Source: Isurus oxyrinchus
Lineage: Eukaryota
Direction: 5' to 3'
Length of the DNA: 64,000 nt
Assembly: GCA_026770705.1 (NCBI GenBank)
Contig: JANJGN010000036.1
Location: forward strand, 1,054,001-1,118,000
Below, piece after piece: positions 9,895 to 64,000 of the stretch (positions are counted from its first letter, which is position 1; every line of letters begins with the position of its first letter). Both the position numbers and the translations under genes were made by a program. A model generated the notes under the pieces. That model did no database searches. It saw only the letters and a program-made list of their open reading frames with translations, and had not been told where the DNA came from.

Positions 9895-12800
9895 CCTCTT
9901 TTGCACCCTGATGTGTCGCTTCGCCTCTGTGACGGTGGTCACATGTGCATTAAAGGCTTAGCTATGAATTGAAACTTTGCACCAGTCTGGATAAGTGATA
10001 ATCAATCACAGACACTGAATGACAACTACGCTAATATTCCCGAATTCACTGAAGTTTCCCAAACATTGCATTAATTCCCCAACATGACAATGGATGGACA
10101 ATGAACACGAAACAACCACCTTCGCTTCCCTTTCCCCCACAGTGGCGATGCCTGACACAATATTGCCAATGTTAGAATCATCTGGTGGTTCTAGCACAGA
10201 AGCAGTCAATTCAGCATTTTGTGTCTGGGTTGGGCCTCTGAAAGAGGAACACATATAGTTCACCTTCTATGCAACGAACCCCCCCCCCCCCCCCGCCCCC
10301 AACCCTCCCCACCGTTTTTCCCGTGGCCCTACAAAAGATTTGTCTTTCTAACTTCTAACAATGATCAAATTTCCTCATTCCAGACCCTTCCACCAATGGC
10401 AACAGTTTCCCTATCCACTGTTTCCATACCGTTCTTGATTTTGAATAACTAATAAATCTCCTGTCAACCTTCCCTTCTCCCAGGAATACAGCATCAGTTT
10501 CTCCAGGCTAATTTGTTTTTAACTGAAGTTCCTCATCATTGGAACCTTCTCAACAATCTTGTCCGCACCCTCTCTATAGCTTTCACATCCTTCCCAAAGT
10601 GTGGTGGCCAGAAGGGTACACAATGCACCAGCTGAGGTCGAACTGAAACTTTATATGGAGGTTTATTTGAATTTTGTGCCTTTGTACTCTATGTCCGTTT
10701 TATAAAATGCCTGAAACACCTACGCTTTACTACTTACACTGTGAACCTATTCCGTTACCTAAATGATTTGAACACATATACAACCTGCTGACTCTGTTCC
10801 TGCAACTCTTTTACAATTGTATTCTTTGTTTAATATTGTCTCTCCTCGTTCTTCAAAACAAAATGTATAATTTCACACTTCTGAGCATTAAATCTAACTT
10901 GCCAGGTGACAGCCCATTCCAGCAACCTGTCTGTGTCCCCAGGAAGTCTATCGCTCTGCTCCTCAGGGTCACAAAACATTCAAGTTTTGTGTAAACAGCT
11001 AATGTTGAAATTGCAGTTGTGACACCAATGCCAAGGCTATTAATATCCACCAGGATAAATCCGGGTCCTAAAATCCGAGCCCTCAGGAACTCCAGCCTAT
11101 ACTTTTCCTCCAGTCTCAATAGTTGGCCTCTTATATTGGACCAACAGGCCGGAGATTGACTTCAGAATATCTCGATGGAAATGCACTTATTATTCTCTTG
11201 AATTTCCCTAATGTACTGTTTAATGTGCTAAAAATATTTAGTGCAACTGACCCATTGTCATTCATTCCACGCCTGTCTTTGCCCACTCTCTCTCTCTCTT
11301 TCTCAAACTACCCAGGATTCGAACAAAAATATCAAGCTCGTGTTAGTTCTTGCAAATCCTGGCTCAGGCGCCAAAATAGCTGATAAGAAAGTTGCCCTGG
11401 GGTTTTAGAAGCAATCTTGATAGATCATGGATTTTCTCAGCTTATATCATTGGAATCAGTGTTGGGGTTGAATTGGATTGTAGACACTGGCAGATGTACA
11501 GAGGGTGCTCAGGATAAAGTTTTCCTCTGGCGCAGTTGCTCACTTTTCATTGTGGGATCTCTTGCCTTGTTCTTCTGAAAGGAGACTCAGTAATTAGCTA
11601 CTCAAAACTGCAGAAGGGAATCACATTGGACAACCAATTATGAAAATGTCCCTGATAAATATTGATCCTCTCCTGATCTGCCGCTTTTATGGGTCCAAAT
11701 GAAAATGAAGATCAACTGTAGAAGTAGGATCGCCGCCACCATTCTGACAACATTAAGGGTCGGAATGCACTATTCCTACAGAGACAAAACAATTAGAAAC
11801 TGCTGATCGATCAAATCAGTATTTCCCGGAATAGTATCATGAGAAACGTGACCCAGTTAAAAGCTAGTGTCTCAAACAGCCAGTGCGACAGATAGCGGCG
11901 TGTGGACGCACAGAATGAAATATATGAAGCAATGTTTTTCGAATTGAGATGAACTGGCCGACAACACTGTCAAGATAGTTCCAAAATTATACTGTATCTG
12001 TATGAAAACATTTTACCGATGTCTACATGGAAACTGAACTATAGATTAATAGACTGAACCAATCGACAAGGCGGCAGTTCGGTCCATAGTGTGTGTGGCA
12101 GCTGTTGGTGCTATTAAAACTCAACATGTTTCCCCGTTTGGTTCTCTGCTTCTGGAAGCAGTTTCTCCGTATTTACTCAATCAAAATAATTCATGATTTC
12201 GAACTTCAGTGCGAATGTTTCTGCTAACCTTCTTTGCTCCAAGGACAACAATCCCAGATTCTCCAGCTTCTCCACATTAAGTGATATCCCTCATCCCGGG
12301 TCCCTTTTCTGGTGAATGTCCTCTGCACCCTCTCTACGGCCCTCACATCTTTCCTTAATATGGCGTCCAGAATTGGACACAATACTCCAGCTGGTGTCGG
12401 ACTGGGGATTTATGAAGTGCAATTTTCTCTCCTATTTGCTTCCACCTTTACTGAAGCCGCGATCTCCCTCTGCTTTTTATCCGCCACCTCAACTTGTCCT
12501 GCCACCTTCAGAGATTAACATCCATGCGCTATCTGCCTGATGAGTGTTCAACTCGGTCAATTCCATATTAACCCAATTTCACTGCTGCTTCAGCACACGA
12601 AGTTAATGTTAAATCCGACTGCTGATATCACCAGTCAATATGACTTAAACTGAATTTTACCAGGAAAATGCAGATTAATAAGGGAGATTCAGGGAAATGA
12701 GGAAGGTGACGGTGTAATTGAGCGAGAGCCACGTCCCTGCAGACCCATCGCTTTTCCCAACAATCTCACCTCTTCACTGCTTTCTGCTCATGAACCCATT

Positions 12801-13943
12801 CTGTGTGGAGATAATCTCAAACCTGTTCCGCATCCATTGCCTTAAAGACTGGAGGAAACAGATTAAATAATAACTTCTCTGAGGGAAACCGGATTATTAT
12901 ATGGATTTTGATGAACGGGATCCTGTTACATGATTATTGGAAAAAGGTGAGATTCATTGAATACCCTCTTTCTCTGCTGTATCACTCTATGATATTAAGA
13001 TGTCAGACAGGAACTTAAGGCGAGCCCAAGAACGTGTTTGTAAGACAAAGTCTCCCTCTCGGACAGAGGAAATCTTTAATTCGGTACAAATTATTAAATG
13101 CACTTTATACATAAATGGTTTACACACATAAACACGTACGTACATAAGTATATATAAAACATATATATTTTATATAGATAGGCAAATGCACACGCACATA
13201 TATAAACATGCGCGCACACACACACATACACCGATATACACGCACACACTCACGGGCACCCACACGCACTCTCTCTCTCACACAAACACATGACCACAAA
13301 CTGACAAATATCTTTATATGTGTCCATTGTTATCAGTTGTCCCGTGAACGTGCTTTAATTAGGAGACAGATTCTTAGCATCGAGTGAATTCCTGCAACTG
13401 ATCCTATGAATTAAAAACCTTCACTGAACAGATCACCAACTCATCTGTCCCTGTCTCTGCTACTTTGGCCCTTAGTCCAATATTTGTTTGGAGACCCCAG
13501 ATGAACGATACAAGTAGAGGGGCCACCGGTTCTCCTGGTTGCAATCAGCACCATGGCGTGACATCTGATGCTCTAGGTTCCATCCGCCTCCCTCGTACCG
13601 GGATTCTGTAAGTGGAGAGATTATAGTTAGATTGTCATTGGTTATTGAGGGATTGGAAGCACTGTCTTGAAAGACATAGAGTAATTTAAGAACAGTGACA
13701 TCATTACCTTTAATTATTCTCAGATTAAGTCTCTCATTTGATTTTCTTCGCCTGAAAAGAGGGACAAGTAAAGAAACTCATAGGATCAGGTGAAATGCCT
13801 TCACCTGTTCACTGGGTAACATTTTAAACTTAGTTAACCATGATTCTGGCAGATTGCAGTTTACCATTCTCATCCGTCTCTTATTCACCACAAACCCGCA
13901 GCACTTGGAAAACAAGTGTCTAATGCAGAGATCCCTTGGACAG
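9895..13943 (-). pseudogene. B1: pseudogene of the B-type V-C1-TM receptor
   Basis: Colinear with B2. Leader 13943-13889 has ATG->CTG and an in-frame TAG. V exon and 5' half of C1 deleted (junction ~13600). C1 remnant ~13445-13600 reads PGTREADGT*SIRCH...STCIVHLGSPNKYWTK. TM remnant ~11673-11775 has donor GT->GA. 31-nt cytoplasmic exon 11544-11574; further remnants at ~11250-11300 and ~9895-9942. Confidence 0.88.
10330..11150 (-). mobile_element. Degenerate CR1-type LINE fragment inside a B1 intron
   Basis: Reverse-strand RT C-terminal decay products (ccgcaccctctctatagctttcacatccttcc, caagttttgtgtaaacagctaat); absent from the corresponding B2 intron. Confidence 0.65.
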
Positions 13944-16110: not shown

Positions 16111-16275
16111 TGCCTAACTCGGCAACATGTTTCAACCCCTATGGTGTATCTATGCATAAACCCAGAATGCCATTCAGGCTGCATATTTCATACCTCCTTC
16201 AGACCGAAAGGAGAGCAAGTTCTCAGTGAGATTCGGATCGGGGGCTCAGAGAATGACCATCTAAAGTCACGGGCA

Positions 16276-19200
16276 ATGAGCTTCCTTGCTGTGTATGCAT
16301 TGTCCCATCTCTTCCAGGGTGAGATATCTTAACATGTTCACATAGAGTGGAGCAGAGTTGGGATGGTGTAAATAAGGAGAAATTGTTTCCAATAGCAGGA
16401 GACCCGGCAACCAGAGGGACACAGATTGAAGAGAACCGGCAAAAGGACCAGAGGGGTTGGGAGAATGGGGACGAGAATATTTTTTCTTTACCCAATAATT
16501 GCTGTGATCTGGAAGGCTCTGCCTGAAAAGGTGATAGAAGCACATTCAACAGGAAATTTCAAAAGGGAAATTAGATGAGTACTCGATAGGGACACATTTG
16601 CAGGGATATGCGGGATGGCGGGGGGTGGTGGGGGTGTGGGGCTGTGGGGGTGGTGGAGGGGTGTAGTTGATGGGGGGGGGTGCAGAATGCGCGATAGCTG
16701 GATAGATCCCTCAAAGTGCCAGCATTCTGAAGGGCCGAATGGCCGCCGCATGTGCTGCACAGATCTATGAGATGCAATTCAGTTATCAGGTTCAATGCAA
16801 AAATCGAGCGAATATAATCAACAACTTGGGAACTGCATCGGTCAGGAACAATGAATGGAATTAATGGGAAACGTAACGTTCCCTGGAATAGGAGAGGTGA
16901 GTGGCTAGATCGACATTATTGGCGATTGAGAAGAGGACAGAGGTTCAAGTGTATTATTAGAGCGATTTATGATATCTGGAACAAAATAAAAAGCCCAAAT
17001 CTAACAAAGAAGAACAGGAAACGAAGGGAGGATGAGACAAGAAATATAAGAGTTCGAAAATTTAGATTTAAAGCAGTTCTTTTAAGTTATTAACTTCACA
17101 AAGTTCCCATTTGTGTATCCCAGTGTTTATCCCAGATTTACTGGTGATTGGACTCGGACTGTGCCTTGGAATGACAGGAATAGAACGGCGCAAACAACCA
17201 ATTGCGTGCGATTTTTTGATATGAACTATATATATTTTTAATGACCGTGCCTCCTCCCTATCGGGGTGTATTCGTCGGAGGCTAGCTTCGGGAGAGAGGC
17301 TGTGCGGGTGCGGGGTGGCGGATTGCACCCTAATCTGAGGTAACTTGTTTATTTCTGTCTTGCTCAGTTATTATGTCTCAACCCGTCTTGTCCCAGTCTC
17401 CACCGGTTCAGATACTCCCTGCGGGGAGTCGTGCTAAACTGAGCTGCCTCGTGGAGAGCTCAGTGGTTGGCTTCGTCTTGTGGTACAGACAATCGGAGAG
17501 AAACAACATGAAGCTGGTTTACACAGCGAGCAAGTACCTCCCCGCAGAGGGGAGGTTTTCCAGCAAGGCTGGTTGCAAAGTGAATAATTGTTCACTGCTC
17601 ATTGTGGATTCCCGGAGAGAAGATTCTGGAATATATTACTGTGCAATCCGTAATTTCACAAATATGGCCCGAATATTTGGAAATGGCTCCCAGTTAGTGA
17701 TTACAGGTAAATTTCATCATTATTCCATCGAATTGGGTATTTCTACAGCAATTAAAAGTATGTGGTTTGAACTCATAATGGTGTTTCTCTTTCATTTGCC
17801 AAATTTAGAGGGCTCCCCCACCATATTACTCCTCGCCCCGCCAGAGAATGAGATTCCCTCCATGGAAAGTGTCCCGTTGTTATGTTTGATCAGAGGATGG
17901 TCCCCCGATTCCTATTCCGTCCGCTGGAATGTTTCTGGACGGGATTCCGAGGGACAGACCGATTCTGGGACAATTGAGACTGACGGGACCTACACCATCA
18001 GGAGTTACACCAGCCTCTCGGCGGAATCTTGGAGAATTGGCGTTCTCTGTACTTGCACCATTCAAATCAACTCCAGTGAAAATCTTCTCAGTGCAAGTCT
18101 CTCATCTCAGAGAGGTAGCGATTAACAGTGACCGTTTAACAATTTATTTACTGCTGATGGCAGGTGTTGCCAATTTTGTAAATTAGAATTGTTCATTTTT
18201 CCGTGTGTGCCCATGTCGCATCATTTTATCATCGATCTATCATATATCTCTCCATCTTTCAGAGTTAAGCTTTCTGAAATTCTAACTCCATTTGTTCTCT
18301 CTACCTCAGAGGTCTATGGACGCTCTGTCACTGAGAAAGATTTTTGTGCACTAAGGGAATAAGGGATGTGGACAGGGCAGGAAAGTGCATTTAATCTGCA
18401 AGATTAACCATGGTCTTATTGAATGGCGGATCTCTTTGAGGCGCCGAATCATCTCCAGCTCCTATTTCCTGTGTTCTTGTGTCTGTCTAAGCATGGATCC
18501 ATGCTAATGGATCATTTGTCAGTGTGCAAAACTGAAAGGCGTGATTACATTCCCAGTGTACTACTTTGTCTCACCATTCCTGTGTTCAATTATCTATTCA
18601 TATCTCTAACTACTTAACATTCACAATATTCCTGTCTGTCTTAGTTAAGCAGTGAGATATAAAATATCTTCTCTATCCGTGTGTCTATCTGTTTATCTAT
18701 CTATCCATCTCTCTTGCTTCCTATGAAACAATCCATTCCTGTCCTAGTACAATTTAAGATAACTGCGTTATATATTTTTGTGCCTGACTCTCTCTCTCTC
18801 TGAAACCCTCTCATTACCGCTCCCCCTCTCTGTCTCTCCATGTCCCTCTCACTGTTCGCCTCATCACTTTCTCTCTCGCTCTCTGTCTTTATCTATTGAA
18901 AAATGTATTCATTTCTCTATCTATCTCACTCTACCTCTGTTTATCATGTCTATTTCTATAGTAGTTAAATGGTGCGTTATAAGAAATCTGGGACATTCAT
19001 CTATCTTCCCACCTGTCGATCTCTCTCCATCTCTCACCCTCTTTCTGTCTCTCTCTCTGTCTCTTTCGCTCTCTCTTTATCCCTTCTCATCCAGTTAAAA
19101 ATGTTCTATGTTTTATGCTCCATCTGTCACACACTCTTCTTTCTATCTCTAACTATCATGTCTTCATTCATTTCTCCGTCCATCTCTTTGTTCTGCTTCT

Positions 19201-21107
19201 CCCTCCTCTCCTTATCTCCATCTCCCATTTCTTCCTTTCTCCCCCACTCTTTCCAACTCTCCCCCTCCCTCTATCCCTCCCTCCCCATCTCTCCCAGACC
19301 CCAATTCCCGCTCCATCGAACTCTCACTCTCTCCCGTAGCCACCATCACTTCCTCTTTCTCCCCAACTTTCCCTCTCTCCCTTGCTCCCTCTCTGCACAT
19401 CTCTCCCTCTTCTCCTCTCTCCCCACCTCTCCCTCGCTCCCCCATTTTCTCTTTTCGCCCTCTGTCTCCCCAATCTCTCCTTCTATCCATATCTCTGCTC
19501 TCTCCATCTCTACTCCGTAAGTGATCTGCTCTCTGTATCACATTCTGCCCATCTCTCCCTTGCTTAACATTTATTTGCTATTAAAACAGTGCTCTATCTA
19601 CGTCTCCCTGTTATTCTCCCTCTATCTCTCTTTAGTTATCTCTCTTTGTTTGTCCTATTTAAATAGTGTTCCATAAGATCGCTGATCTCTCTCTCGCTTT
19701 CTCTCTCTTTATTTCAGCCTTAATAAACGTGAATTTATCTGTTTGTTTGTCACTCGCTCTCAGTATCCGATTCAAATAGCATTTTAGAGATCTCTTCTCA
19801 TTCTCCCTTTCTGTCTCTCTCTTTCTATCTACAGATATCTACCCTGTTTAAATAGAGCTTTATAAGATCTCTGCTGTCCCTTGCCATAGTCTCTCTATCT
19901 TTGTCTCTATCGCTTCTCTCTTTCAATCTCGTTCTACTTCTGTCCTATTTCAATATTGTTCTGTAAGGTCTCTGCTCCATTTCCAGATAATGAAAGATAT
20001 AAAAATCTATTCACGTCTCCAGGTGAAATCAGGCATCTAATTTGTGATTATTTTCCCCATATGTTTAATTAATTCTGCAAACTTCCTTTTAAAGTAAAGG
20101 GTTTATTTTTTTGCAGATTCTCCACTGTTTACCACCTGCAGCTTCCTGCTTTCCGCGGGTTTGCTGGCGACGGCGCTTCTCCTTGTGGGGGTAATCATTG
20201 TGGCCGGGAGAAGGAGTTGCCAGACCCGGCAGACAGGTAGGGATTTTTGGGAGATGCTGTAACTTCGCGGCGCTCTCAATACATTCATTTATCAATGGGT
20301 TATTGACACTTTCAGCCTTTTCGGATTGAAATGTCCTCATGCTCAGTTCAAATTTTACTTTCTAACAGGAAAAATGAAGAGTAATGAGGAAATGAAAGAT
20401 TGCAGAGAACAACGAGAGAATAAAGAGGTAAAAGAATTGAATTGTTGCCTTAAGCCTGGATACATTTCACAAAATGTTAGTCCTAGGTTTAAATTTCATA
20501 GTTATTGTGATCAATCTAGATAACTTTGCGTCATTGGTAGTACAGGATGGCAGAAAAAAAGCTTCAATTCTTCTCGTGGGGAAGATTAAGGGGTAATTTA
20601 ATCGAGAGTTTTAAAATGATAAAATCATATGATCGTGTCTGTAGAAATAAGCTCTTTGCCCTGGTGGCGCGGTTCTGGTGTTTGTGTGCGGGTTGAGTAG
20701 TAGGTGTTGGCGGGATGGAGTCCAGGACAAGGGTGCAGGACTTTAAAATTATCGGGATGTCATTCAGGGGTGATGTCAGGGTGCACTTTGTCCCACAAAG
20801 GTGAGTGGAAATCTGGAGCTCTCTCTCCTCAAAAGTTGTTGAGGCTGCGGGATCAATTGGAAATGCCAAATCTTAGATTGATAGAATTTTGTTGGGTACG
20901 GGGGTTAAGGATTATGGAACCAAGGTGGAAGTTATGGATGGAAGTTATGATACAGAACCGCCATGTTCTAATTGAATAGAGTGGAGGGGCTGAATGGTCT
21001 CCTGCTATCCCGATGATGATGGTGTTCGTTACATTAATAGATTCGTTTTTTTTTCCCCACAGACGCTTTATGCCCGCTTAGCCTTCAATCAGGATCCCAC
21101 ACTTTGA
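16276..21107 (+). CDS. A1: intact non-rearranging VJ-C1-TM immunoglobulin-superfamily receptor (TCR/IgL-like) with a cytoplasmic TxYxxL motif, ~303 aa
   Basis: Exons: leader 16276-16318 (MSFLAVYALSHLFQ), VJ 17368-17706, C1 17809-18114, TM 20117-20236 (DSPLFTTCSFLLSAGLLATALLLVGVIIVAGRRSCQTRQT), cytoplasmic 20369-20427 (GKMKSNEEMKDCREQRENKE), terminal 21063-21107 (TLYARLAFNQDPTL*). All introns GT-AG, phases 1,1,1,1,0, no stops. Confidence 0.88.
17368..17706 (+). CDS. A1 exon 2: germline-joined V-J Ig domain
   Basis: QPVLSQSP...AKLSC...LWYRQ...GRFS...EDSGIYYCAIRNFTNMARIFGNGSQLVIT: B- and F-strand Cys, WYRQ, DxGxYYC and FGxG all in one exon, no RSS. Confidence 0.93.
17809..18114 (+). CDS. A1 exon 3: C1-set Ig domain
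   Basis: EGSPTILLLAPP...VPLLCLIRGWSPDSYSVRWNVSG...DGTYTIRSYTSLSAESWRIGVLCTCTIQ; acceptor 17807-17808, donor 18115-18116. Confidence 0.92.
18780..19960. repeat. Long CT-rich low-complexity tract in the A1 C1-TM intron
   Basis: Imperfect (CT)n/(TCTA)n; a counterpart occupies the same intron of A2 (~49070-50030). Confidence 0.85.
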
Positions 21108-21729
21108 TTGGAGAGCAAGGAGGGAGAGAGAACTCACAGTCCTCCTCCCGAACACGACGTGTTGCAGACATTTTCCACCTTGGACGGGAAATTCCGAAAA
21201 TCCAACCGATGTAAATTCAGGCATATTCTTGGCGCAATTTACGATGTCGCCAAAAGTGGCAACAGAATAATCTCATAATGCCGGCTATTCTAACCATGAA
21301 ATATCGCCTGCAGTTCCACTCAAGCACTCCAGCTTTCTGTGATTTGGAATTGGCGTTTACTAATGCACTCTGCATCTTTATTCAGTATGTCAGCAAGATA
21401 TTATTCAAACAGGATTTACAATGTATCTTGCTCGCGTTACCAACATATTAAAACAGGTTTGAAAACCAATGTTAGCTGTGTGATAACAGTTTTTTGGATC
21501 ATTCAGAGCAGATGCACCCAGGGTATCTCTAAGGTCAATGTAGAAATACATTTTTAGAGCAAATTTTAGCAGGTTAGAAACAGGGTTAAGTACAACAAGT
21601 ACTGGATGGGAGTTTAGGCTGCAGCGTTAGTGGACCCCAAGCCTTCACTGGTTGTGTCCTGGTTTGAACATTGTTGTATGTACTCTTGAAATAGGATTGT
21701 TGACAACCCATCCACCTTTTTGTTAATAC

Positions 21730-24308: not shown

Positions 24309-24309
<1 letters not shown>

Positions 24310-28020: not shown

Positions 28021-30082
28021 GCCTCTTCTTCCCTATTGCTCATGTTATTGGTTCAAATTTAACCCTCAGCGTTTGACTCCATTAACACGTATTAACCAGT
28101 GGGTGGTCTATTTATATTTTACTGTAGTAGCCGATTCGCCTGAGCGAACATTTTCTCCCTCCCTGCCATAGCAGAATCCATAGTATTTATTATGTACCGC
28201 AGTTATGTATGTACCTCTCAGGCATGTATTACTGTGCAGCTAAAAAGCTCTGTAGGGTGTATTTACGTTTGAAAATGGTTCAAAATTTTTTGTCACTGGT
28301 ATAAATGATGATGTTTTTACAATTGCATTATCAATAACCAGGAAGTTATGGCCAATAGCCATCGAATCTCAAAGCTCGATCCCATCACGTTGTCCAATAA
28401 TCGACCTTTGAACTCCGCCTCCGGCTGATATTCTCTCGATGAGAGTGGACCTTTAGGTTTGTTTGGGGAAGTGCGTGGACCCAGATTCCTTTGCCGCCCA
28501 CTGGAAAGTTTCGGACGGGGTGCCCAGGGACAGAGCAATTCCATGATAATCGAGCCGGACGGGACCTACCCCATCAGGAGTTACATAATCCTCTGGGCGG
28601 AAACTTGGAGCAGCGGCGATCTCCGTCCTTGCGTGTCTCCAAACAACGCAAGTGAAAATCTTCCAAGTGAAAGTACCTTATCTCAAGAAGGTAACTGTTA
28701 ACAGTTTGCTCGTGCATTTAATGTGCGGCCTATTATTTTGTCATATCTCTTTGCACATCTGAGCTTCCCCCTTCAATGTGTTCACGTATCATTTTCAGAG
28801 CCCTTATCCCGCTCTCATGTATCTCAGAATTTCAGAGTTTATCTTTCAGAATTCTTAGTCCATCTGTCTAGTAAGGATAAAATCCCAATTTTCTGTTTAC
28901 CACTTTCCCTCTCGATTCCTATACGACATTATGTGAATCCCATAGGGCAGATCTTCCAGCACTGAGACAGTGCACTCTCCTATTTGGCTCGCTGCTGCTG
29001 TTTCTGCTTCAGAAGAACCTCCTCCCACTCCTCTTCACCTCAGCTCATCACCATGTCCTTCTGCTGCTTCCTCCCTCATGTTCTTATACAGCGTCAACCA
29101 TTAATCCATATCTGCAATTCACCTCAACCGCTGCGTGTGGGAATGTGTTCCACATTGTTCCTGATTAAAGAGTTTCCTCCTGAATTCTCGACTGGATTTA
29201 TTAGTGAATGTGTGACATTGATGGTTTCTAGTTCTGGTCTCCTCAACAAGTGCCAATACCTTTTCTACTTCTGCACGAAAGTCCCTTTTATAATCTTAAA
29301 GATATTGATTAGGTTACCCGACAGACTCCTCTTTTCTCGAAAAAAAGATGACAGCCTGTTCAAACTTTCCTGATTTTCATAACCTCTCATTTCTGGTAAC
29401 ATTCCAGTAAACCCCATCTTTTTCGCTCCGTTCCCTGTGCCTGCATATTCTTTTTATGATATGCAGACCAGGATAATTCAATGGACTCAATGTACAGTCT
29501 AACTAATTTCTAATATACTTTAATGTCGCCTTTTTTCTTTTCATTGCTGGCCCTGGCTTTTATCATCTTATTAACCTCTGTTATTTTTTTCAATGATTTT
29601 TGTCTCGTGCCTCTGAACTCTCTGCTCTTCTGTCCGATTTCAACAGTTATGTTCCATTGATTGTGTAGCCCAAACGCTGTCATATGTCTAACCCGGGCCC
29701 CAACTATTCTTCTTCCTAGATAAATGGTCTCTATATAACGTTTCATCCAAGACAAAGTAAAGGAATCCGTTGGATGACTATAAGCAGGTTAGTCTTTCAT
29801 GCATGGCGGACAAACGTTGAGCAGTTAATTGCTATACATGAAATTTGTGAGTATTTCATAATAGATGGGTTCGTTAAGGGCATTCAGCACCGACCTGTGA
29901 ATGTGTAGTCATGCTTAACACATTCAATAGGGACTGGCCTTTCAAGAATTATCCGAGTGGATAGTTAAATAGAATGCAGTTCATGGGGTTCCACGAGGTC
30001 TTCATGTATTTGTGCTTTATAAATTTATCTAAGTATCCCTCACTCGCACTGGGTCTTCTTTATAACTACCCACGTATTTATG

Positions 30083-30166
<84 letters not shown>
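30083..30166. repeat. (TATC)n microsatellite, ~21 units
   Basis: Perfect tetranucleotide run. Confidence 0.97.
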
Positions 30167-32438
30167 GCTCTATCCAAATACATATCTGTCCATCTATTCT
30201 ATCCATCCGTCTCCCTCTATCATTCTCTCACACGCTGCCTTTGTGACTGTCTTCCTCTATCTAGCCATCCATATAGTTTCAAATTTCCAAATTTGCTTCG
30301 CTTGCCTAATAAATGTCGATTTAAAAAAAATGTGCTTGATGAAGTTGGTGACAGTGACAAGACTGACATTGTTTACCCTTCCCGAGCCGCCATGCGTAGT
30401 GTGTGCTGGAAGTCATTGAATGTTAAGCAAGGGACAAACGGCGCGGGTTTCAGTATTTTTCTGAAATACAATGAGATTCTTCAATTCTTGCTCCCTACCA
30501 CTTGCAGTTCCAATTTTCAGAGATTTCGTCCGAGGCGGGCTTTCTCCTTCAGGGGATGGTTCTTGTGCCCGGGAGAAGGGGTTGCTGGAACCGGCAGTCA
30601 GGGAGAGATTATCAGGAGAAGCTGTAACTCCGCTGCGCTCTCAATGCATCCATTAATCAGTGGGTTTGTGGCAGTTTCAGCTGTTTGCATATGAATTGAT
30701 GTCATTTCAGCTAAGTTTAAATTTCAATTTCTAATAGGCAACATGAACAGTGATGCTGAAATGACATATTCCAGAGCAACGACACAAGAAAATGCGGTTA
30801 CTATGGATGGAATTGTTTCCTAACATGTGCAGATACATTTCACTGCATTTTAATCGAAGTTTTAAAGTCCATTGTTAATGACATATGGATCTAGGCGATT
30901 TTGCATCGTACATATTGCAAGATAACACTGTTTACACGTGATACAACATTATGAAATTACATGAAAAATATAGATAGGTGTTCAATTAAATATATCAAAA
31001 TTGAGATTGATAAGCTTTCGCTGGGTAAAGGGGATTAACCGTTAGGGAACGTAGGAGAGGAGATGGGGTTAAGATACAGATCAGAAAAGACGTTATTGTA
31101 AGACAGAACATGCTCGAAGGGCTGAATGGACTCCTGATGATGGTAAGCTCACTATAACCATTTGTGTTTTCTCTTACAGACTGTTTTTGCTCGGCTGGCG
31201 TTGAATGCGGATCCCACAGTCTGATTGCAAACGATATTGAGAACTCAAGTTCTGCTTCTGGGCTATGAAGTGTAGTGGAAAATTTCCTCTCTTGTGATCT
31301 TATTGGAGGAACGCCTAGAGGTGTGACCCTTTCCAAGAGACAGCCATGGCAAATTATGTTCATGGCTGAATTATTATTTATTAATAAAAATGAGCAATGT
31401 AGCATGCCGACTAGTCACCTACTGCTGAGTCCTCAATTCTGAAAGAACAGGTCCTTTTTCAAGCCCAAATTGACTCTCTGGAGTTTTAGCTTTGGGCTCA
31501 GTATCAATATGTTTCTACTGTCCTGTGGCAGTGTTTTTATGTTCATTCTGCATCTTTGTGTAGCGCTTGAGCAGGAAAGAGCGCATTAGTGTCCAAGTTA
31601 GCAATCCATTAAACACGTTTTGAAATGCAAACACTGTTTGGGACTTCAGGCTGTTTGGCCCCTCAGTGCAGTTGTGCTCAGTGAATCTGCAATAGCAGGG
31701 TACAGGATATCTTTATAGGACATATGTTTGCAGGTTAAACGTGGGACCATTTCAACGAGAATGATACCAGAGCTAAGAGGTTATGATGCCGGGGAAGATT
31801 GAACAGTCGGGGCCTCTTTTCTCCCCAAAAAAGAAGACTAAGTGGTGACCTGATGAAGATATTTCAAATTATGAAACGATTTGATACGTGGAAGCAGAGA
31901 GAGAATGCTACCAGTTGCAGGCAGAGCTACAGCAAAGGCCATGAACATTAGATATTTGCTAATAATTCCATTGGGGAATTCAGGAATAATTGCTTTCCCA
32001 GGAGAAAGGGGAGAATACAGAACTCACCACCACAGTGTGCGGTCGAGGGAATATCAGAGATGCAATTAATGGGGAAGCTGGACAACTTCGTCATGAATAA
32101 AGACATAGGAGGACATATTGATGGGGTGAGGGTGTTGGAGGAGGGTCGTCTGAAGCACAAACACCAGCAGAGAGCAGAGCGGCTGAATAGCTTGTTTCTG
32201 CTCCTGAAATGATTTTGAATTTTGTAAAGCAGAACACATAAGCAGTGACTGAAAGCTCTTTGTTTGGAAAAAGTTTGCATCATTAACACAATTCCTTCTT
32301 CACACTAAAATAAGTAACTAAATGTGAAAGTGGGATTCAGCGGACCGAGGTGATCTGATATTTTTGTGTTACACCTTCAAGATTATAAATATTAAAAATT
32401 AAGGTTTGAAACCACTGCTTTTAAGCAGTGTTACATGG

Positions 32439-38400: not shown

Positions 38401-40189
38401 CTTCAATCTGTGTCCCTCTGGTTACTGACCCTCCTGCCAGTGGAAACCGTTTCTCCATGTTTATCCTGTCGAAAAATCTCATGATTTTGAACACCTCGCT
38501 TAAGTCTCCCCCTCATCCCTTTCTGCTCTATGGAGAACACTACCAGATTCTACAGTCTCTCCACATTTACTGAAGTCCCTCATCCCTGGTCCTATTCTGG
38601 TGAATCTTCTGTACCCTCCCCAAAGCATTTGTCCCTGTTTTCTGCTTATAAATTGCATGCAGTGTGAACTGACCTCAATTTCATTCCAACATCCACTGCC
38701 TAAACAGTGGGGCGGATGTAGATTCGGCATTAACTTTTGGAAGAGAAATCAGATTTTAACTTGAAGAGGAAAATGTGGAAGTGTTGTGTAGAAACGGTAG
38801 ATCCAATGGGATAACGCTTACAAAGAGGTAGCACTGGCACAATGGGCAGAAGTCGCTCTTTGCTCATCTATCGTTCTAGGATTCGACGATGTGACCGAGA
38901 AATATAAGGCAAGTCGGGAAATTGTTTACAAGGGAAAGTCTACACATGGGGCTAAGGTAACACTAACTTATTTTTTATCAAATTTAGAATATATATATTT
39001 ATAGCTTGCTTTACAGTTGCAGCTCCCAACAATAAATCAATTTCTCCAATTGACTCTAAAGTCGCATAAAAGCCTCCATTGAACACATCGCCTGCTCACC
39101 TCCCTCTGACTCTGCTGCTTTGGAGAACGGAAAACTCTTTGTCCAATATTTGCGTGGAGACCCCAATTGAACAATACAGGTACAGAGACCGCCGCTTCTC
39201 CAGGTTTCCCTCGACACCACGACGTGACTTCTGATACTGTAGGTCCCATCCGCCTCCATTGTACCGGGATCGCTCGGCCCCTCAGTGACCACGCCGGAAA
39301 TATTCCAGATAATAACAATCTGGTTGGAAGAAACTCCACTGACCAAACACACTAAGGGGACGGTTTCCCTCAAATGCAGCTCACCCGGCGGGACAAACAC
39401 CAGCACAGCCGTCTTGTTGGTGGAACTGTCTGGACAGAGATTGGGAGATATCTACGATTCGTTTGCTCCAAATGATAATTATGTGCATGATCTCAATTAA
39501 TTTCACTTGCTCTCTTACCTCCAACCAGTAGTCTTGGTCCATTTTGGAGCGGCGCATTGCTATCCCTATGAGCACTGTAATAGGAACCCGAGTCATTCAC
39601 CTGGAGATTGCGAATTTCCAGAATCAATTGAAGTTTGTTGTGGCCTTCTTTGGAAATAAACTTACAATTGGCCCCCTGACAGGACTGGGTGTCGATTAGT
39701 ATCGGGGCTTCATCCACACGTTGTTTGTACCAGAAATAACTAGAGACCAATTCCACTTCGTAAAAGTAACGAGAGGTTAATTCCACCGTCTTTCCGACTT
39801 CAGCTGTCATTATGAAGGGGATCGGAGACAGAGAGAGCTCGGATTCTGTAACAAGATAGATTATTGTTACATCACTATCACTTATTGGGAGATTGTAAGC
39901 AGCCGCTATGAAGGACTTCGCCTGTAATATTAAAGTAGTCACATCATTGCCTTTAATTATTGGTGTTTAGATTAATTCTGCAATTTGAATCCTTCGCTTT
40001 CTCGGAGGGAAGACTAAATAAAATCACAGGATCAGGTAAAATCGCTGTACCTAGCCACTAGGTCGTATTTTCAGCTTAGTAAACATTGATTTTGGCTGAT
40101 TTCGCTTTAACTTTCTCACCCTCCTCTTACTCACCATAAAGCTGCAGCATTTGGAAAATGAATATCAGAGATAAAGATCCCTTCGACAT
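35402..40189 (-). CDS. B2: open-frame non-rearranging V(J)-C1-TM immunoglobulin-superfamily receptor with a terminal LYASL motif, ~342 aa
   Basis: Exons (minus): leader 40189-40135 (MSKGSLSLIFIFQMLQLY), V 39845-39519, C1 39429-39100, TM 38059-37958 (GWCMLALPVIITVLVILVLLLVLISIWIRKSGRS), cytoplasmic 37862-37832, 37601-37549, 37128-37079, terminal 35482-35402 (TQGGPLYASLDLAALEKRSKKKGGRR*). All GT-AG, phases 1,1,1,1,2,1,0, total 1029 nt, no stops. An assembly gap lies in the last intron. Confidence 0.8.
36417..36635. other. Assembly gap (N run)
   Basis: 219 N. Confidence 1.
39100..39429 (-). CDS. B2 exon 3: C1-set Ig domain
   Basis: DSSTNKTAVLVFVPP...VPLVCLVSGVSSNQIVIIWNISG...EADGTYSIRSHVVVSRETWRSGGLCTCIVQ; clearly homologous to the A1 C1 domain. 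Confidence 0.92.
39519..39845 (-). CDS. B2 exon 2: V-set Ig domain with a J-like end, canonical Cys absent
   Basis: AEVGKTVELTS...YFWYKQRVDEAPILI...LILEIRNLQVNDSGSYYSAHRDSNAPLQNGPRLLVG. Confidence 0.88.
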
Positions 40190-47959: not shown

Positions 47960-48164
47960 ATAACACACACACAGCGAAGCACACACACACACGCAGACCA
48001 ACACAGACACATACGCATAGACACAATAACACACACACAAAAATAGCGCCCCCCCCCAAACACACACACAGACATACTCACAGACACAGCGAAACACGTG
48101 CAGACACAGACGCACACAGCGACACAAACAAACACCGACATATACAGACACACACACAGCGATA

Positions 48165-48204
<40 letters not shown>

Positions 48205-48245
48205 CATTCAAACCGCGACAAAAATAGACATGCACACACACAGCG
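47960..48245. repeat. Imperfect (CA)n tract
   Basis: Direct reading. Confidence 0.9.
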
Positions 48246-48380
48246 CAGAGATGCGCATGAACTCTCATAATCTGTGTGTTCTGTTTCCCGATTGTCCAGC
48301 CAATGGGAATTGCTTCTCTGATTCACACTGTTTAGAATCGTACAATGTTTACGGCACGGACAGCGGCCACTCGGCCCACC

Positions 48381-51128
48381 GTGGACGGGACCTATACCAT
48401 CAGGAATTACACTAGCTTCGTGGCAGAAACATGGAGCAGCGGCGCTCTCTGTACTTGCGCCGTTCAAATCAACTCCATTGAATATATTCTCATGAAAGTG
48501 TCTCATCGCAGAGAGGTAGCTATTAAAAGTGACCATTCACCCATCGATTTAATGCTGATTGGAGTCTTTGTCGATGTTGTAAATCAGAATTGCCTGTGTT
48601 TCCGTGTGTGTCCATGGGTCATAATTTTATCATTGACCTATCATAGACCTGTCAATCTTTCAGAGTTTAGCTTTCTGAAACTTTTACTCCATCTGTTCTC
48701 TCTGCCCCGGAGAGCTATCGGATGTTCAGTCACTGAGGAAGATTTTTGTACACAAAGGGATGTGGACAGTTCGGGAATGTAAAGTTGCTTTACAAGATTA
48801 GCTATGGTCTTACTGAACCTGCTTCGAGGGACCGAAGGTTCTCGTGCCCCTTTTTATTGAGTTCCTGTGTCTATGTAGCAATATTGACATGGTTGTATGC
48901 CACTTGATAGTTTGCCAGTTTATAAAATTGAAAGGCGTGGTGACATTCCCAGTGTACCTCTTTGTCTCATCATGCCTCTATACGATTATAGATTCATCTC
49001 TCTATCACTTTGTCATGTACAAAATTCCTGTCGGTCTCACTTGAACAGTGAGGTACAAGATATTTTCTACATCTGTCTGCCTATCTGTTTATCTGTCTCT
49101 CCATCTCCCTCTCTCTGTCTTTCTGGGTCTGTCTTTCTCTTCTCTCTCTCTCTTTCTCTATACATCAATCTATTGCTACCCTAGAACATTTTAATATATT
49201 TGCCCCATCTGTCTGTCTTTCTGAGTCTCTGTCTCTCATCCTCTCTCTGACTTCCTCCCTCTCTCCTGCGACTCTCTTTCTCTGTCTCTGTCTGCCACTC
49301 TCTTTGTGTTAGTCTGTCACTTTCGATCTGCCTCATTCTCTGTCTCCATTGATTTATTTATTGATCTCTGTATATATCTACCTTTCTCTCTCTCTGATTA
49401 ACTTATCTTTTTTACTGTGGTTAAATGGTGCTGTATATGACACCAATTCCATTTATCTATCTACTAATCTCTCTCTCGCTCTCTCCATAACTCTCTTTTT
49501 CTCTCTCTTTCTCTGTCTCCCTCTTCCTCGCAGCCTCTCATTCTTGCTCCCTGCCTCTCTCTGTCTTTGTATCTCGTTCTCTCTTGCCATCCTATTCTCT
49601 CCCATTTAAACAGTTCTGTAAAATCTGTCAGCTCTTTCTATTACAGTACTTTCATCTCACTCTCTCTCTCCATCTATCTGTCTACACAACCCTCTATCCT
49701 GCTCTCTCTGTACCCCAGCTCCCTCTATTTCAATCCAGTTTGAACAATGTGCTCTCTCTCCTTCTTTGTCTGCCTCTTTCTCTCTTCCATTATGTATCTC
49801 TCCAACTAACGATTTCTCTATGTCTTTCATTTACAGTTAATCTGTTTGGTATCATATACCTGTTTTCTCGATCAGTCTCTCCACCTCCCTCTATCTTACT
49901 AGTTATGCAGTGTTTGAACAGTGGTCTCTGCCATCTCATGCTATCCATCTCTCCATCTCTCTCTCACTCTATTTCTCCTTCTTATTTGTTTCTATTTCTA
50001 CTTGTGCCCTGTTTCAACATTGCTCTGTAAGATGTCTGCTCTATTTTAGGTTCATGAAGCATGCAAAAAAAAAGTCTATATCTGTTTTCAGGTGAAATAA
50101 GATATTTAATTGGTAATATTTATCTTATTCAATTAATTCCACAATAATTTTTAAATGGGAATTTTATGTATTTTTGCATATTCTCTGCTCCCGACCACCT
50201 GCAATTTCCCACTTTCCAGGAGTTTTTCAGCGGTGGCGCTTCTCCTTCTGGGGATGATCCTTGTGACCAGGAGAAGCAGCTGCAGGAACCGGCAGACAGG
50301 TAGCCATCGTTGGAGACGCTGTAACTCCGCGGTGCTCTCAATCCATCTATTTATCAATAGGTTATTTACACTTTCAGCCGGTTCACTGTGAAATGTAGCC
50401 ATTTATGCTCCGTTCAATTTCTACTTTCTAACAGGAAGCATGAACATTGATGAGGAACTGACTGATTCCAGAGAACAATGAAGGAATAAAGAGGTAAAAT
50501 ACTGGAAATTCTTGTTGCCACTGCGCGTGAATGCTTCTCACTCATTTTTAATCCAAGGTTTATATTTCATAGCTATTGTTATGTAAGTCTGGAAAATGTT
50601 GCATAGTGAGAACAACAGGATAGCAAAAACAAGTGTTCAATTCCTCGAGTGCAAAAGATTAAGAGGTGATCTAACCGAGGGCTAAAGGATACGATAGCGT
50701 TAATGGAGAGAAACTATTTCCTATGGGGAGGCTGGGCGGATGGAATCCAGAATAAGAGGCAGAAAGTTGACATTAGAACAGCTCGTTCAGGGCTGATATC
50801 AGGAAGCGCTTCTACGCTCAAAACCGAGTGGAAATCTGGAACTCTCTGCCCGGAGAAGCTGTTGAGATTGCCAGATCAATTGGAAATGTCAAAACTGAGA
50901 TTGGTAGATTGTTGTTGCATAAGGGGCTTAAGGATTATGGAACCAGGTTGGGTACATGGGAGTTATGATACAGATACTCCATGATGTAATTGAACAGACT
51001 GGAAGGGCTGAATGACCTCCTCCTATCCCTATGATGGTGGTGTTTGTTGTAGTAAGAGTTTATGTCTTTATTTTCCCCCACAGACACTTTATGCCCACTT
51101 GGCCTTCAGGGAGGATTCCACACTCTGA
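48381..51128 (+). pseudogene. A2: 5'-truncated pseudogene of the A-type receptor
   Basis: C1 3' half 48381-48515 (VDGTYTIRNYTSFVAETWSSGALCTCAVQINS); TM exon 50180-50299 with acceptor AG->AT; cytoplasmic exon 50435-50493 with premature TGA; terminal exon 51084-51128 TLYAHLAFREDSTL*. V and 5' C1 missing; a LINE-tail fragment abuts the break. Confidence 0.9.
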
Positions 51129-55319: not shown

Positions 55320-57804
55320 GAGAGCTTCCTAATGCCGTGTGCGTTGATGCATCTGTTCCCAGGATTGTGCCTTATTCACTCCATATTCAGGATGGCTTAA
55401 GGCTACTGAGATGGTCAGCCAAGAGGAAAATTATCCCCATACCTAGATTGTAGTATATATCTTTCAAATGAATGAACTGAATCGTGTCCACTTGATCGAA
55501 GTCGATGACGTATCAACATTTGACAACCTATCAGATTAGATGTTAAACTGAGACCCTCAGTCTGTCCCTTTGCGGTTGCAAAGGGTCCGAGGGCCAATAT
55601 GTGCAGAGGACCCGAGAGGTGAGTGGAGTTAGGCGGCAGAGTTCCCCCCTGTCTCCCTTGGGCCAATATTTATCCCTCAAACAACATCAGTGAAAACGTG
55701 ATGTGGGCCATAATGACGTTGTTATTTGTGGGTTTTGCTGTGCGCAGTTACAGCTGCCGCGTCTCCTCCATGACAACAGAGAGTAGTTTCAAATAAAAGT
55801 ATTTCATTGTCCCTGAAGCACGTCCTTCCCTGTTACTGTTGTTATTGTTTCAATTCAACCTAAACTTTTGACCCCGTGCGCATTTATGAATGAGTGGACG
55901 GTATATTCTATTTTTAACGGTTGTAGACGATTCTTCATTGGAAACATTTTCTCTCTCCCTGCCATGGCAGAACCCATAGTATTGATCCTCTATCTCTCAG
56001 TTACTGCATCTCAGGCAGCTTTGTCCCAGGCTCCCGCAGTTCAGATTCTCTCGCTTGGAAGTATCTTCAAGGTGCACTGTAACAAGTCACTGTAACATGG
56101 GGCTGGAGTTGAGGGCGGGGCGGGGGTGTTGGGGGAGGGAGGCGGGGGGCGTGTGTGGGGCTTGTCTACTGGTGTAAACGGAGCCAACGGGCGCATCTGC
56201 AACAGGTTTTGCCCCGTGAAAAAATCGAACCCTTCTACCGAGAGATTTTCGGGAGAAGTTAAGGACAATTTGACTCTCTATTCTCGGATCATTGCGGGTT
56301 TGCAGGCCAGTGATTCGGGCATGTATCACTTTGTAACTGAAAAATTTAGTGGGATGCTGTTTACGTTTGGAAAAGGTTGCAAATTGCTCATCAGGGGTAA
56401 AAATTACGAGAATTTTGCCCATTGTGCCTTCAATAATCAGAGAGTTATGGCCAATAGTGAATGAACCTTAATGCCCTATCGAACCGCCTTCTCCAATAAC
56501 CGACCTACAAAATCCTCCACCCGCTGAGATTCCTATCATTGGAAGGGACTCTTTGGTGTGGTTGGTGAAGGGCCTGCACCCTGATCCCTTTGTCGCCCGC
56601 TGGAATTTTTTTCGGGCGAGAAATGAAGGGGCAGAGCGATGCCAGGGCAATCGAGCTGGACGGGACCTCCAAAAACAAGAGTTAAATAAATTTTTGGGCG
56701 GAAACTTGAAGCAGCAGTGCCCTCTCTACTTGCCAGTTCAAAAAAACTCTAGTGAAAAATCTTCCAACTGAAACTGTTTCATCTCAGAAAAGTAGATATT
56801 AACAGTTAACTTGTGTATTTAATGTGCAGCCTATTTGTTAGCAATATCTCTTTTTACATTAAAACTCCCTTTTTCTATGCGCCCATCTATCATTTCCTGA
56901 CCCCTAACGTCACTCTCATATAGTTCATGATTTCAGTGCTTAGCTTTGTGAATTTTTAAGTGTTTCTGTATCGTTGGTTAAAAAGCATATTGAATGAGAT
57001 AAGCTATTTTGACATGTCAATGATTAAAGAAAATGACAAATTTTTGTTTACTAATTTCTCTCTCGATTCCCATATGTTATTATCTGTATTCCTCAGAGCT
57101 TGCAGCACAGAAGCAGGGCATTCGGCCCTTGGGCTCTGTGTTGATGTTTCTGCTCCACACGAACCTCCCCCGACCTCTCATTATCTCACCCCATCAATAT
57201 ATCATCCTGTTCCCTTATTCATTATGTGTTTATCCAGCGTCTCGTTTAAACGTGTCTCAGCTATTGACTTTCAGCTATTTCAATAACGCTATTTCAACTC
57301 AGTTTAAATTTCACTTTCTAACGGGCAACATTAGCAGTGATGCGGAACTGATAGATTGCAGAGCAAGGACACAAGTAAATACGATAACAATGAATTGAAT
57401 TGTTTCCTAGCATGTGTAGATACATTTCACTGAATTTTAATCAAAGTTTTAACATTCATAGTTTCTGTCATATGAGTGCAGGACATTTTGCATAGTGCAT
57501 ACTGTTTGATAACACTGTTTACATGTCCTATAACACTGCGATGTCAGATGCAATTTATTGACTGGAATTCAACTGCTAATTGATATTGGCCACTTTTTAT
57601 TGGGTAACAGGGATTTAGTGTTATAGAAGGAAGGCACGGGGATGGGGTTAAGGTACAGATCAGAAATGTTCTTATTGAAAGGCAGAACAGGCTCGAAGGG
57701 CTGAATGGCCTCCTGATGATGTTGTGGCTCACGATAATTATTTGTGTTTCCTCTTGCAGAATAATTTTCCTCGACTGGTTATTAATGCGGATTGCACATT
57801 CTGA
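55320..57804 (+). pseudogene. C2: pseudogene of the subtype-C VJ-C1 receptor
   Basis: Leader remnant 55320-55362 (ATG and donor lost); VJ exon 56001-56396 (QAALSQAPAVQIL...VHC...*...ERFSG...SDSGMYHFVTEKFSGMLFTFGKGCKLLIR) with stop, G-rich insert and frameshift; C1 ~56483-56791 decayed; TM exon absent; cytoplasmic remnant ~57325-57383; terminal exon 57760-57804 NNFPRLVINADCTF*. Confidence 0.88.
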
Positions 57805-62959: not shown

Positions 62960-63117
62960 NNNNNNNNNNNNNNNNNNNNNNNNNNNNNNNNNNNNNNNNN
63001 NNNNNNNNNNNNNNNNNNNNNNNNNNNNNNNNNNNNNNNNNNNNNNNNNNNNNNNNNNNNNNNNNNNNNNNNNNNNNNNNNNNNNNNNNNNNNNNNNNNN
63101 NNNNNNNNNNNNNNNNN
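62960..63117. other. Assembly gap (N run)
   Basis: 158 N. Confidence 1.
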
Positions 63118-63953
63118 CACCACCATAATCCCTAAAATATATAACAGCAACGCCCATCTTCACATACTGACCTCCAGACATTCACCTTGTTCCCATACCC
63201 CTTAATACATTTAGACAACACAATGAAATGGATACCAGCTTCAACAGCTTACTGTGGGGGAGTGATCCAGATTTGCACTGCACCTTCCACAGAACCACTT
63301 GCTCCAAAACGCACTACAATCACAATAAAGCTCAGACATGTGACTTTAAGATTAAATACTAACCAAGAGACACTGTGTAAAAGTGAAGTGGAACCAGCAC
63401 AATGTTCTTTCATCGCTGTCCCTCTCCTCCTGTGTTCCCGTTCAAAAAATGATGAAACATATCAGATCTCAGGCAAAGCATCTCAATCCAGGAATGATGT
63501 TGTCAGCTCAACAGAAATTGCAGGTTTATCCAGATGAAATTCAATTATAATTGAACTATTAATCAGCACAAACATTTGGTGCATCGTTCTACTTGAATAT
63601 TAATTTATTTTGTTTACATACAGACATTTATCAAGAAATGTACATCCTGCTAGTAACTTGGTTTACAGGATCAGCAGAAAAGATCCAAGGAAACTAGGGA
63701 AATTCTTTCCTCAGTGTTTCTTTTAACCTTGCGTTTAATGAGAAGAATGGAATATCCTTAACAACAATCAAAACATCTTTAAGATTCAACGAAATGAGAC
63801 ATTCTTTGAAAGTTCTGGCGCGTGCATGGGGAAAGTTTAATTGTTTGATGGAAGTCACCTTAGCTGCATGTTTATTTCCATAAAGCTGTAAGCTCTTTGG
63901 CTAATGCAGGCCCCTCCTGATAGTTGATCAGAAAGAAACCTTCCCGATTCTCA

Positions 63954-64000
63954 TCAGCGGCGCGTCTTCTTTTTTAATCTTTTGTCCAAGGCAGCCAAGT
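63954..64000 (-). CDS. B4: end of the terminal exon of a further B-type gene lying beyond the window
   Basis: Reverse strand reads (D)LAALDKRLKKKTRR*, same frame and stop position as B2 DLAALEKRSKKKGGRR* with one codon fewer. Confidence 0.7.
   Translation of the reverse strand, partial: LAALDKRLKKKTRR

Follow-up and report, generated by a model that had tools for sequence, protein, structure and literature searches.

The leading candidates for remnants of the receptor once split by RAG are non-rearranging genes in which a variable (V) domain with a built-in joining (J) strand precedes a C1-set constant domain. UrIg, UrIg2 and PRARP have each been discussed as relics of such a pre-RAG receptor (PMC12227049, PMC10751288; the PRARP paper of Fu et al. 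2019 is cited in the latter). Does a 64,000-nucleotide stretch of the shark Isurus oxyrinchus (contig JANJGN010000036.1 of assembly GCA_026770705.1, positions 1,054,001 to 1,118,000 of the forward strand; below, the window, numbered from its first letter) hold a further family of this kind? A sequence-only reading had proposed, at 9895-64000, a cluster of head-to-head genes for two chains, A and B, of an invariant and probably inhibitory heterodimer. Our analysis indicates that the window is probably part of a large tandem birth-and-death family of non-rearranging immunoglobulin (Ig)-superfamily receptors of cartilaginous fish, with two lineages, A and B, in which gene A1 is transcribed, gene B2 is open and the other copies are dead. 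The VJ-C1-transmembrane family with an inhibitory-type tail is real, at least partly expressed, old within cartilaginous fish and mostly decayed in the window. In architecture PRARP comes closest, and the family would be best filed with genes of that kind.

Two non-rearranging V-C1 receptor genes

Coding sites for V-set and C1-set domains were located with tblastn and domain hidden Markov models (HMMs) in all six frames, which yielded seven sites (Table 1), two of them, A1 and B2, free of stops. Remaining exons were placed with orthologous proteins, after which splice sites and phases were checked. Queries were single exons or the in-frame V-intron-C1 open reading frame (ORF) at 17373-18122; exon translations were joined only in tree-building. 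All exon phases of A1 and B2 were compatible and no exon of either gene contained a stop.

A1 (16276-21107, plus strand) is intact, with six exons encoding 303 aa that comprise a split leader, V, C1, the stalk SPLFTTC, an uncharged transmembrane (TM) segment and a tail ending in TLYARLAFNQDPTL. B2 (40189-35402, minus strand) has the same domain order in eight open exons with canonical splice sites, encoding 342 aa. The predicted products would carry, in order, a split leader, a V domain with built-in J strand, a single C1-set domain, a membrane-proximal cysteine, an uncharged TM segment and a short tail with the motif LYAxL. The domain order of a T-cell receptor (TCR) chain in a non-rearranging gene, as claimed in the sequence-only reading, was recovered in both genes, where Pfam V-set and C1-set domains are followed by the cysteine and the TM segment. 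The finer features it had listed also held: V and J-like strand share one open exon, and a search for recombination signal sequence (RSS) heptamers and nonamers in and near the V exons of A1 and B2 found none; the V-C1 intron is short (102 nt in A1, 89 nt in B2); the TM segments (FLLSAGLLATALLLVGVIIVAG in A1, MLALPVIITVLVILVLLLVLISIW in B2) contain no charged residue; and the last exons end on a YxxL motif with an immunoreceptor tyrosine-based inhibitory motif (ITIM)-like tyrosine, TLYARL in A1 and PLYASL in B2. RSS-mediated rearrangement was rejected on the absence of RSSs.

The two chains can be aligned end to end at 34% overall identity, including the stalk cysteine, which occupies the same alignment column, and the LYAxL tail. 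Homologous C1 domains alongside very different V domains, as had been stated, were confirmed for A1 versus B2 (41% identity in C1, 29% in V). A single tail tyrosine motif is conserved family-wide; once phosphorylated, this tail might recruit SHP-type phosphatases and thereby deliver an inhibitory signal.

The earlier count of two intact genes stands for A1, with its open frame and spliced RNA contigs, but for B2 only at the ORF level, both canonical V cysteines being serine. B2 retains the extra C'-C'' cysteine pair (SCQGANCKF), and its branch is not unusually long in our trees. Its V may be a working disulfide-less domain, or B2 may be a young pseudogene. An assembly gap falls in the last B2 intron. 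Every B2 exon expected from the orthologues lies outside it, in order and in phase; the reading frame is therefore independent of the gap, which affects intron length alone, and breakage of the coding sequence by the gap was ruled out.

Transcription of A1

RNA evidence came from run X1, labelled as probable RNA, over A1 only. Its contigs on 17367-17528 and 17534-17698 show 0 and 1 differences, respectively; the contig over the V exon ends exactly at the V acceptor 17367, without a difference over 162 nt. A further contig covers exon 1, with record 1 ending at the following acceptor, and another begins at the C1 acceptor 17807. Record 7 lies on 20115-20232, continues with 61 unplaced letters and resumes on 21061-21200, joining exons 4, 5 and 6; the unplaced letters correspond to the final 4 nt of exon 4 followed by exon 5, minus 2 letters common with the acceptor. 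Depth in X1 was absent over the unique parts of the A1 introns, and the spliced A1-type transcripts show 0-5 differences per exon. Because contigs end and join at predicted junctions, A1-type mRNA with these junctions exists, and the check on spliced transcripts that had been suggested for the locus came out in favor of A1.

Runs X2, X3 and X5 (labelled ‘organism B’) span A1 exons and introns alike at 16200-21200, mostly at 90-95% identity; this is presumably DNA, either of a related species or from paralogues that have diverged. The V-C1 intron of A1 (17707-17808) is stop-free and in frame, with 17334-18122 forming a single 263-codon ORF; its retention would insert 34 residues between V and C1 and keep the frame. 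The third intron (18200-20000) includes an extended low-complexity stretch rich in C and T (GC skew -0.42, AT skew -0.33) with many spurious Ser/Leu/Pro ORFs, and similar skew occurs at 48000-50000 in the paralogous psiA3. Summed contig depth is very high in all four runs at 16367-16533, 18371-18537 and 20709-20875; 16369-16618 resembles 3833-4073, and further copies of the element occur at 5724-5914 and 38265-38566. These high-depth stretches look like dispersed short repeats in A1 introns and flanks. Directly downstream of A1, a 154-codon ORF at 21887-22351 (plus strand; …SLDFQTAFDKVPH…) resembles, on visual inspection, part of the reverse transcriptase of a long interspersed nuclear element.

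A tandem array with mostly dead copies

Positions 9895-64000, previously credited with six pseudogenes or remnants, contain four (psiB1, psiA2, psiA3 and psiA4), plus the tip of another gene at the window end, which was correctly called and belongs to a third B-type gene, B3. Two more fragments, both A-type, lie to the left (at 4578-4810 and 5628-5681), so the array extends leftward past 9895. Self-alignment resolved a tandem unit of ~26-28 kb at 72-78% identity, with the order B(-) / A-I(+) / A-II(+): unit 1 comprises psiB1, A1 and psiA2; unit 2 comprises B2, psiA3 and psiA4; and unit 3 is represented by the B3 tip only. With this identity and a majority of dead copies, the proposal of birth-and-death evolution was upheld. 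Because the unit order repeats in the array, head-to-head B/A is, as read from the layout, the ancestral arrangement of the unit. The second copy of the duplicated unit carries one block in inverted orientation (25156-26445 versus 60063-58769, 76% identity).

In both head-to-head pairs of the window, one partner is dead. The start codon assigned to B1 at 13943 did not survive inspection: the position reads CTG, a TAG follows seven codons on, and the V exon and half of the C1 exon are deleted. A1 consequently faces a dead B1, and opposite B2, intact as an ORF, stands psiA3 without its 5' half. The proposed co-regulation of A and B from a shared promoter was thus not supported in the window.

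Table 1 Coordinates of genes, exons, remnants, domain search sites and assembly gaps in the window
Feature	Position	Strand	Evidence and remarks
A1 exon 1, first leader part (MSFLAVYALSHLFQ)	16276..16318	+	Like orthologue leaders; donor G/GTGAG (slash at the exon end); covered by X1 contig
A1 exon 2, leader end and V with fused J-like strand (YYCA...FGNGSQLVIT)	17368..17706	+	Pfam V-set 1.4e-14; no RSS
A1 exon 3, C1-set	17809..18114	+	Pfam C1-set 7e-9; X1 contig from acceptor 17807
A1 exon 4, stalk Cys (SPLFTTC; TTC), uncharged TM, RRSCQTRQT	20117..20236	+	Phase and splice checks; X1 record 7
A1 exon 5, cytoplasmic (KMKSNEEMKDCREQRENKE)	20369..20427	+	Accounts for 61 unplaced letters of X1 record 7
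A1 exon 6, TLYARLAFNQDPTL then stop	21063..21107	+	Tyrosine like that of an ITIM or immunoreceptor tyrosine-based switch motif; covered by X1 record 7
B2 exon 1, leader (MSKGSLSLIFIFQMLQLY)	40135..40189	-	Orthologue match, phase checks
B2 exon 2, V, Ser for both canonical Cys (VELTSRY, YYSAH), G strand LQNGPRLLVG	39519..39845	-	Pfam V-set 2e-5
B2 exon 3, C1-set	39100..39429	-	Pfam C1-set 3e-9; 83% identity to Carcharodon P0079
B2 exon 4, Cys (GWC) just before uncharged TM	37958..38059	-	Orthologue match, phase checks
B2 exon 5, cytoplasmic (EPCKRSHNE)	37832..37862	-	Orthologue match, phase checks
B2 exon 6, cytoplasmic (FSLRERRQREGHNERQT)	37549..37601	-	Orthologue match, phase checks
B2 exon 7, cytoplasmic (DDHHQRDGSWPCQDAVQ), diverged from orthologues	37079..37128	-	Weak score of 29 versus control maximum of 26; canonical splice sites, phase compatible
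B2 exon 8, TQGGPLYASLDLAALEKRSKKKGGRR then stop	35402..35482	-	Orthologue match; putative part of the B2 copy, beyond the gap
Assembly gap in last B2 intron	36417..36635		Flanked by exon 7 (ending at 37079) and exon 8 (starting at 35482)
psiB1	11543..13943	-	CTG at start position, then TAG; deletion of V exon and first half of C1 by alignment to B2
psiB1 C1 remnant	13465-13605	-	Contains stop
psiB1 TM remnant	11653-11769	-	
psiA2	28218..31221	+	V remnant; C1 with stops 28412-28686; decayed TM 30493-30621; last exon QTVFARL, Tyr to Phe
psiA3, paralogue of A1	48360..51125	+	Second C1 half, TM, cytoplasmic exon with stop, last exon TLYAHL; leader and V gone
psiA4, paralogue of psiA2	55323..57374	+	Leader-like exon; V and C1 with stops and insertion
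B3, end of last exon (LAALDKRLKKKTRR then stop)	63954..64000	-	Collinear with B2 3' flank
A-type C1 remnant	4578-4810	+	Contains stop; left of 9895
A-type leader-like exon (MSFLGVCALSSLFQ)	5628-5681	+	Left of 9895
Assembly gap in non-coding DNA	62960-63117		Flanking blocks collinear with paralogous unit
Search site, C1	4578-4810	+	tblastn/HMM
Search site, half C1	13465-13605	-	tblastn/HMM
Search site, V and C1	17376-18110	+	tblastn/HMM
Search site, V remnant and C1	28218-28686	+	tblastn/HMM
Search site, V and C1	39131-39843	-	tblastn/HMM
Search site, half C1	48360-48497	+	tblastn/HMM
Search site, V and C1	56009-56787	+	tblastn/HMM

Distribution and diversification in cartilaginous fish

Top protein matches of the window were automatic gene models from Cetorhinus, Carcharodon, Mustelus, Heterodontus and Scyliorhinus. 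A-type proteins (~303 aa, tail ETLYARLAFNEDPTL) occur in Cetorhinus, Carcharodon, Mustelus, two Scyliorhinus species, Heterodontus and the sawfish Pristis. B-type proteins (~340 aa, tail GGPLYASLDLAALEKRSKKK) are present in the A-bearing sharks and additionally in Stegostoma, Hemiscyllium, Rhincodon, Chiloscyllium and Heptranchias, as well as in Mobula, Hypanus, Hemitrygon, Amblyraja, Rhinoraja, Narcine and Callorhinchus. A was sought in orectolobiform sharks, most rays and the chimaera and not found, in word-limited searches that provide a lead rather than proof. In Cetorhinus, Heterodontus, Mustelus and Carcharodon, A and B lie on contigs of equal length, presumably one and the same, while in Scyliorhinus canicula the A match and the B matches fall on different contigs. 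Rays and the chimaera carry a canonical ITIM tail, I/V/SxYxSL.

Paralogues within a species share a mean identity of 70-86% in V and 74-90% in C1. This average V divergence of 14-30% means that the family is diversified, and the description of an invariant receptor was therefore abandoned.

Public records of A and B bear inconsistent automatic names or are listed as uncharacterized or hypothetical, and annotation of these clusters is unreliable. Several shark models (P0001, P0011, P0101, P0114, P0072 and P0074) are fused neighboring copies or have spurious N-terminal extensions; a 524-aa Cetorhinus model and a 548-aa S. canicula model are examples. Searches of the literature on PRARP, on VJC1 and on shark receptors that carry ITIMs and do not rearrange returned no description of the A/B family.

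Proposed pairing of A and B

By analogy with antigen-binding fragments (Fabs) and TCRs, the ectodomains could dimerize V to V and C1 to C1, with the stalk cysteine fixing the dimer, as A:B, as homodimers or as both. For the complex model, both ectodomains were taken from Cetorhinus: residues 18-237 of P0002 for A and residues 19-240 of P0080 for B. Compared to 0.06 for the best control, the A:B complex scored 0.67. Among solved complexes, 51 of 78 reached that mark, against 2 of 108 among mismatched pairs. Contact agreement between runs was at least 78% and the predicted local distance difference test value of the partner at least 76; in the model, V:V and C1:C1 contacts are Fab-like, and the stalk cysteines 237 and 240 touch. 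The test ran on A:B, can be passed through likeness to solved antibody or TCR pairs and also lets a close cousin of the true partner pass. The model thus supports dimerization of a Fab-like kind and gives no specific support to A:B over A:A or B:B. For the A:B heterodimer of the sequence-only reading, this amounts to one passed in silico test, a weak point in favor from a method that cannot tell hetero- from homodimers.

The stronger form of that proposal makes A and B the obligate partners in a single invariant heterodimer, TCR-like and disulfide-linked, with both genes co-regulated by a shared divergent promoter; it is the most likely of the alternatives but appears rather doubtful. In its favor are the head-to-head layout of the repeat unit, the presumed shared contigs in four shark genera, the stalk cysteine at the same column and the complex model with its Fab-like contacts. 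Against it, each head-to-head pair of the window has a dead partner, and the intact A1 and B2 are oriented tail to tail across 14 kb that contain psiA2. B without a detected A in Orectolobiformes, most rays and the chimaera speaks against an obligate pair, as do the separate contigs of S. canicula, and the V divergence among paralogues against invariance. Moreover, neither chain looks like the signaling partner of the other because both have the inhibitory-type tail and no charged TM residue, and the complex test is blind to the choice between a true partner and its close cousin and between hetero- and homodimer.

Relationship to PRARP-type genes

Fu et al. reportedly described PRARP as a linked gene pair with non-rearranging VJ in one exon, a V-C1 ectodomain, a TM segment and an ITIM tail. 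PRARPs are said to form monomers and disulfide-linked homo- and heterodimers, to have been proposed as a relic of the antigen-receptor precursor and to have been described in bony vertebrates only, with a degenerate C1 in birds. The window displays a one-exon V-J without RSS, V-C1 with TM segment and ITIM-like tail, and two linked paralogous genes. All full-length non-chondrichthyan matches found belonged to bony vertebrates and had the order leader-VJ-C1-Cys-TM-ITIM. Among the look-alikes were salmonid proteins (P0118 and P0122) with the tail VQYATLD, a Sceloporus lizard protein (P0045) with the tail GLCYAQLDLARRTEDRKKRK, a Podarcis lizard model lacking TM and tail (P0059), a partial Lepidochelys turtle model in which two gene copies are apparently merged (P0013) and an Anser goose protein with degenerate C1 (P0121). 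We take these salmonid, lizard, turtle and goose proteins to be probably PRARP. The lizard tail resembles the shark B tail GPLYASLDLAALEKRSKKK, and the V-domain tree joins B to sauropsid proteins (94/90) and A to salmonid proteins (95/78). Architectural homology to PRARP-type genes is clear, and the A/B family would represent their chondrichthyan counterpart.

Other observations weigh against the reading of the family as a whole. Because many ITIM receptors have YAxL tails, the likeness of lizard and shark tails may be convergent. At the -2 position of the tail motif, A has Thr and B has Pro; the copies in the window are therefore not strict ITIMs. In B2, the canonical V cysteine positions are occupied by Ser codons (TCT and AGT); each of these cysteines is kept in 68 of 70 aligned V domains of the family, B2 alone lacking both. 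Deep nodes were not resolved in the V+C1 tree, and approximately unbiased (AU) tests could not reject an A+B clade (p 0.24), nor could they reject one clade uniting the entire family (p 0.38). The family profile scored PDB antibodies at 130-188 bits, compared to 120 for salmonid, 132 for turtle and 66 for goose proteins. Profile scores thus do not tell the bony-vertebrate look-alikes from antibodies, and by BLAST score a sole TCR-beta chain could not be told from the look-alikes either. A and B are therefore candidate orthologues of PRARP, compared here with presumed bony-vertebrate members in trees that give no strong support.

A more far-reaching version, which we regard as unlikely, holds that A and B had already split before cartilaginous and bony fish diverged, B corresponding to the sauropsid PRARP type and A to the salmonid type, and that the head-to-head pair is a surviving, never-rearranging two-chain receptor with Fab/TCR-like V-to-V pairing and a living model of the heterodimer targeted by the RAG transposon.

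Other families and decay

SIRPs likewise have V domains with a J-like strand, C1-set domains, a TM segment and ITIM tails, and a feature search gave the SIRP-alpha cluster 0.96, behind three V-C1 clusters (~290 aa) at 0.96-0.98. Membership of A and B in the SIRP family nevertheless seems improbable, with one C1 domain rather than two in A1, B2 and every full-length orthologue, one tail tyrosine motif rather than four, an uncharged TM and no SIRP chain among the best solved-structure matches, all of which were Ig or TCR.

Even less probable is that the local cluster is a functionless, decaying remnant in which A1 and B2 are young pseudogenes. At least five copies are dead, B2 has lost both V cysteines and, at 72-78% identity, the duplicates are old. 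Despite this age, A1 retains all canonical residues, its splice sites and a 303-codon open frame; its spliced transcripts show at most five differences per exon, and neither A1 nor B2 has a terminal branch much longer than its orthologues have.

Sharks possess germline-joined Ig genes, the V domains are most like V-lambda, V-kappa or V-alpha and the C1 domains most like IgG CH3, but the idea behind the automatic names ‘Ig lambda-1 light chain-like’ and ‘Ig heavy chain Mem5-like’, that A and B are ordinary germline-joined shark Ig light-chain or TCR genes, can be dismissed: C1 is followed by spliced-on TM and ITIM-like exons, both in RNA contigs and in every full-length orthologue, RSSs are absent near the V exons, the TM segment has no charged residues for CD3 assembly and the V-C1 intron measures ~100 nt.

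Significance

If a PRARP-type family with two old lineages indeed extends across cartilaginous fish, it would have been present in the common ancestor of jawed vertebrates, and the sharks would offer an expressed gene pair for testing V:V pairing, ligand and signaling. Of practical note, the analysis shows that dozens of gene models from sharks and rays that bear the names ‘Ig light chain-like’ or ‘Ig heavy chain Mem5-like’ are not immunoglobulins.

Comparison with known receptor systems

NITRs of bony fish are a germline-encoded, diversified multigene family with J-like motifs in V and ITIM tails. Unlike A and B, they have V, or V plus an I-type domain, without a C1-set domain. SIRPs share with A and B the V domain with J-like strand, C1-set domains, TM, ITIM tail and multigene organization and are set apart by architecture, having two C1 domains, several tail tyrosines and a charged TM in activating members, none of which was seen in the window. 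TCR chains have the same order of leader, V, J, C1, connecting Cys and TM, and the modeled A:B geometry is Fab/TCR-like; A and B differ by the lack of rearrangement and RSS, by the uncharged TM, by an inhibitory-type tail of their own rather than CD3 and by a C1 domain that sequence searches place nearer to IgG CH3 than to a TCR C domain.

Within cartilaginous fish, UrIg and UrIg2 also feature a non-rearranging VJ exon, a split leader and C1-type domains, and UrIg2 has a TM segment (PMC12227049). They contain many C domains (nine in nurse shark UrIg2) and are single-copy genes in the major histocompatibility complex or the antigen-receptor complex, and UrIg2 forms homodimers with an atypical V:V contact (PMC12227049). 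With so many C domains they are a different kind of gene from A and B, which have one C1, an ITIM-like tail and multiple copies; identity with UrIg or UrIg2 (VJ plus at least three C domains) was rejected on the single C1 of A1 and B2.

PRARP and the A/B family are alike in one-exon VJ, V-C1-TM order, ITIM-type tail and linked gene pair. A and B differ from PRARP in their occurrence in sharks, rays and chimaera and in their large tandem arrays with many pseudogenes.

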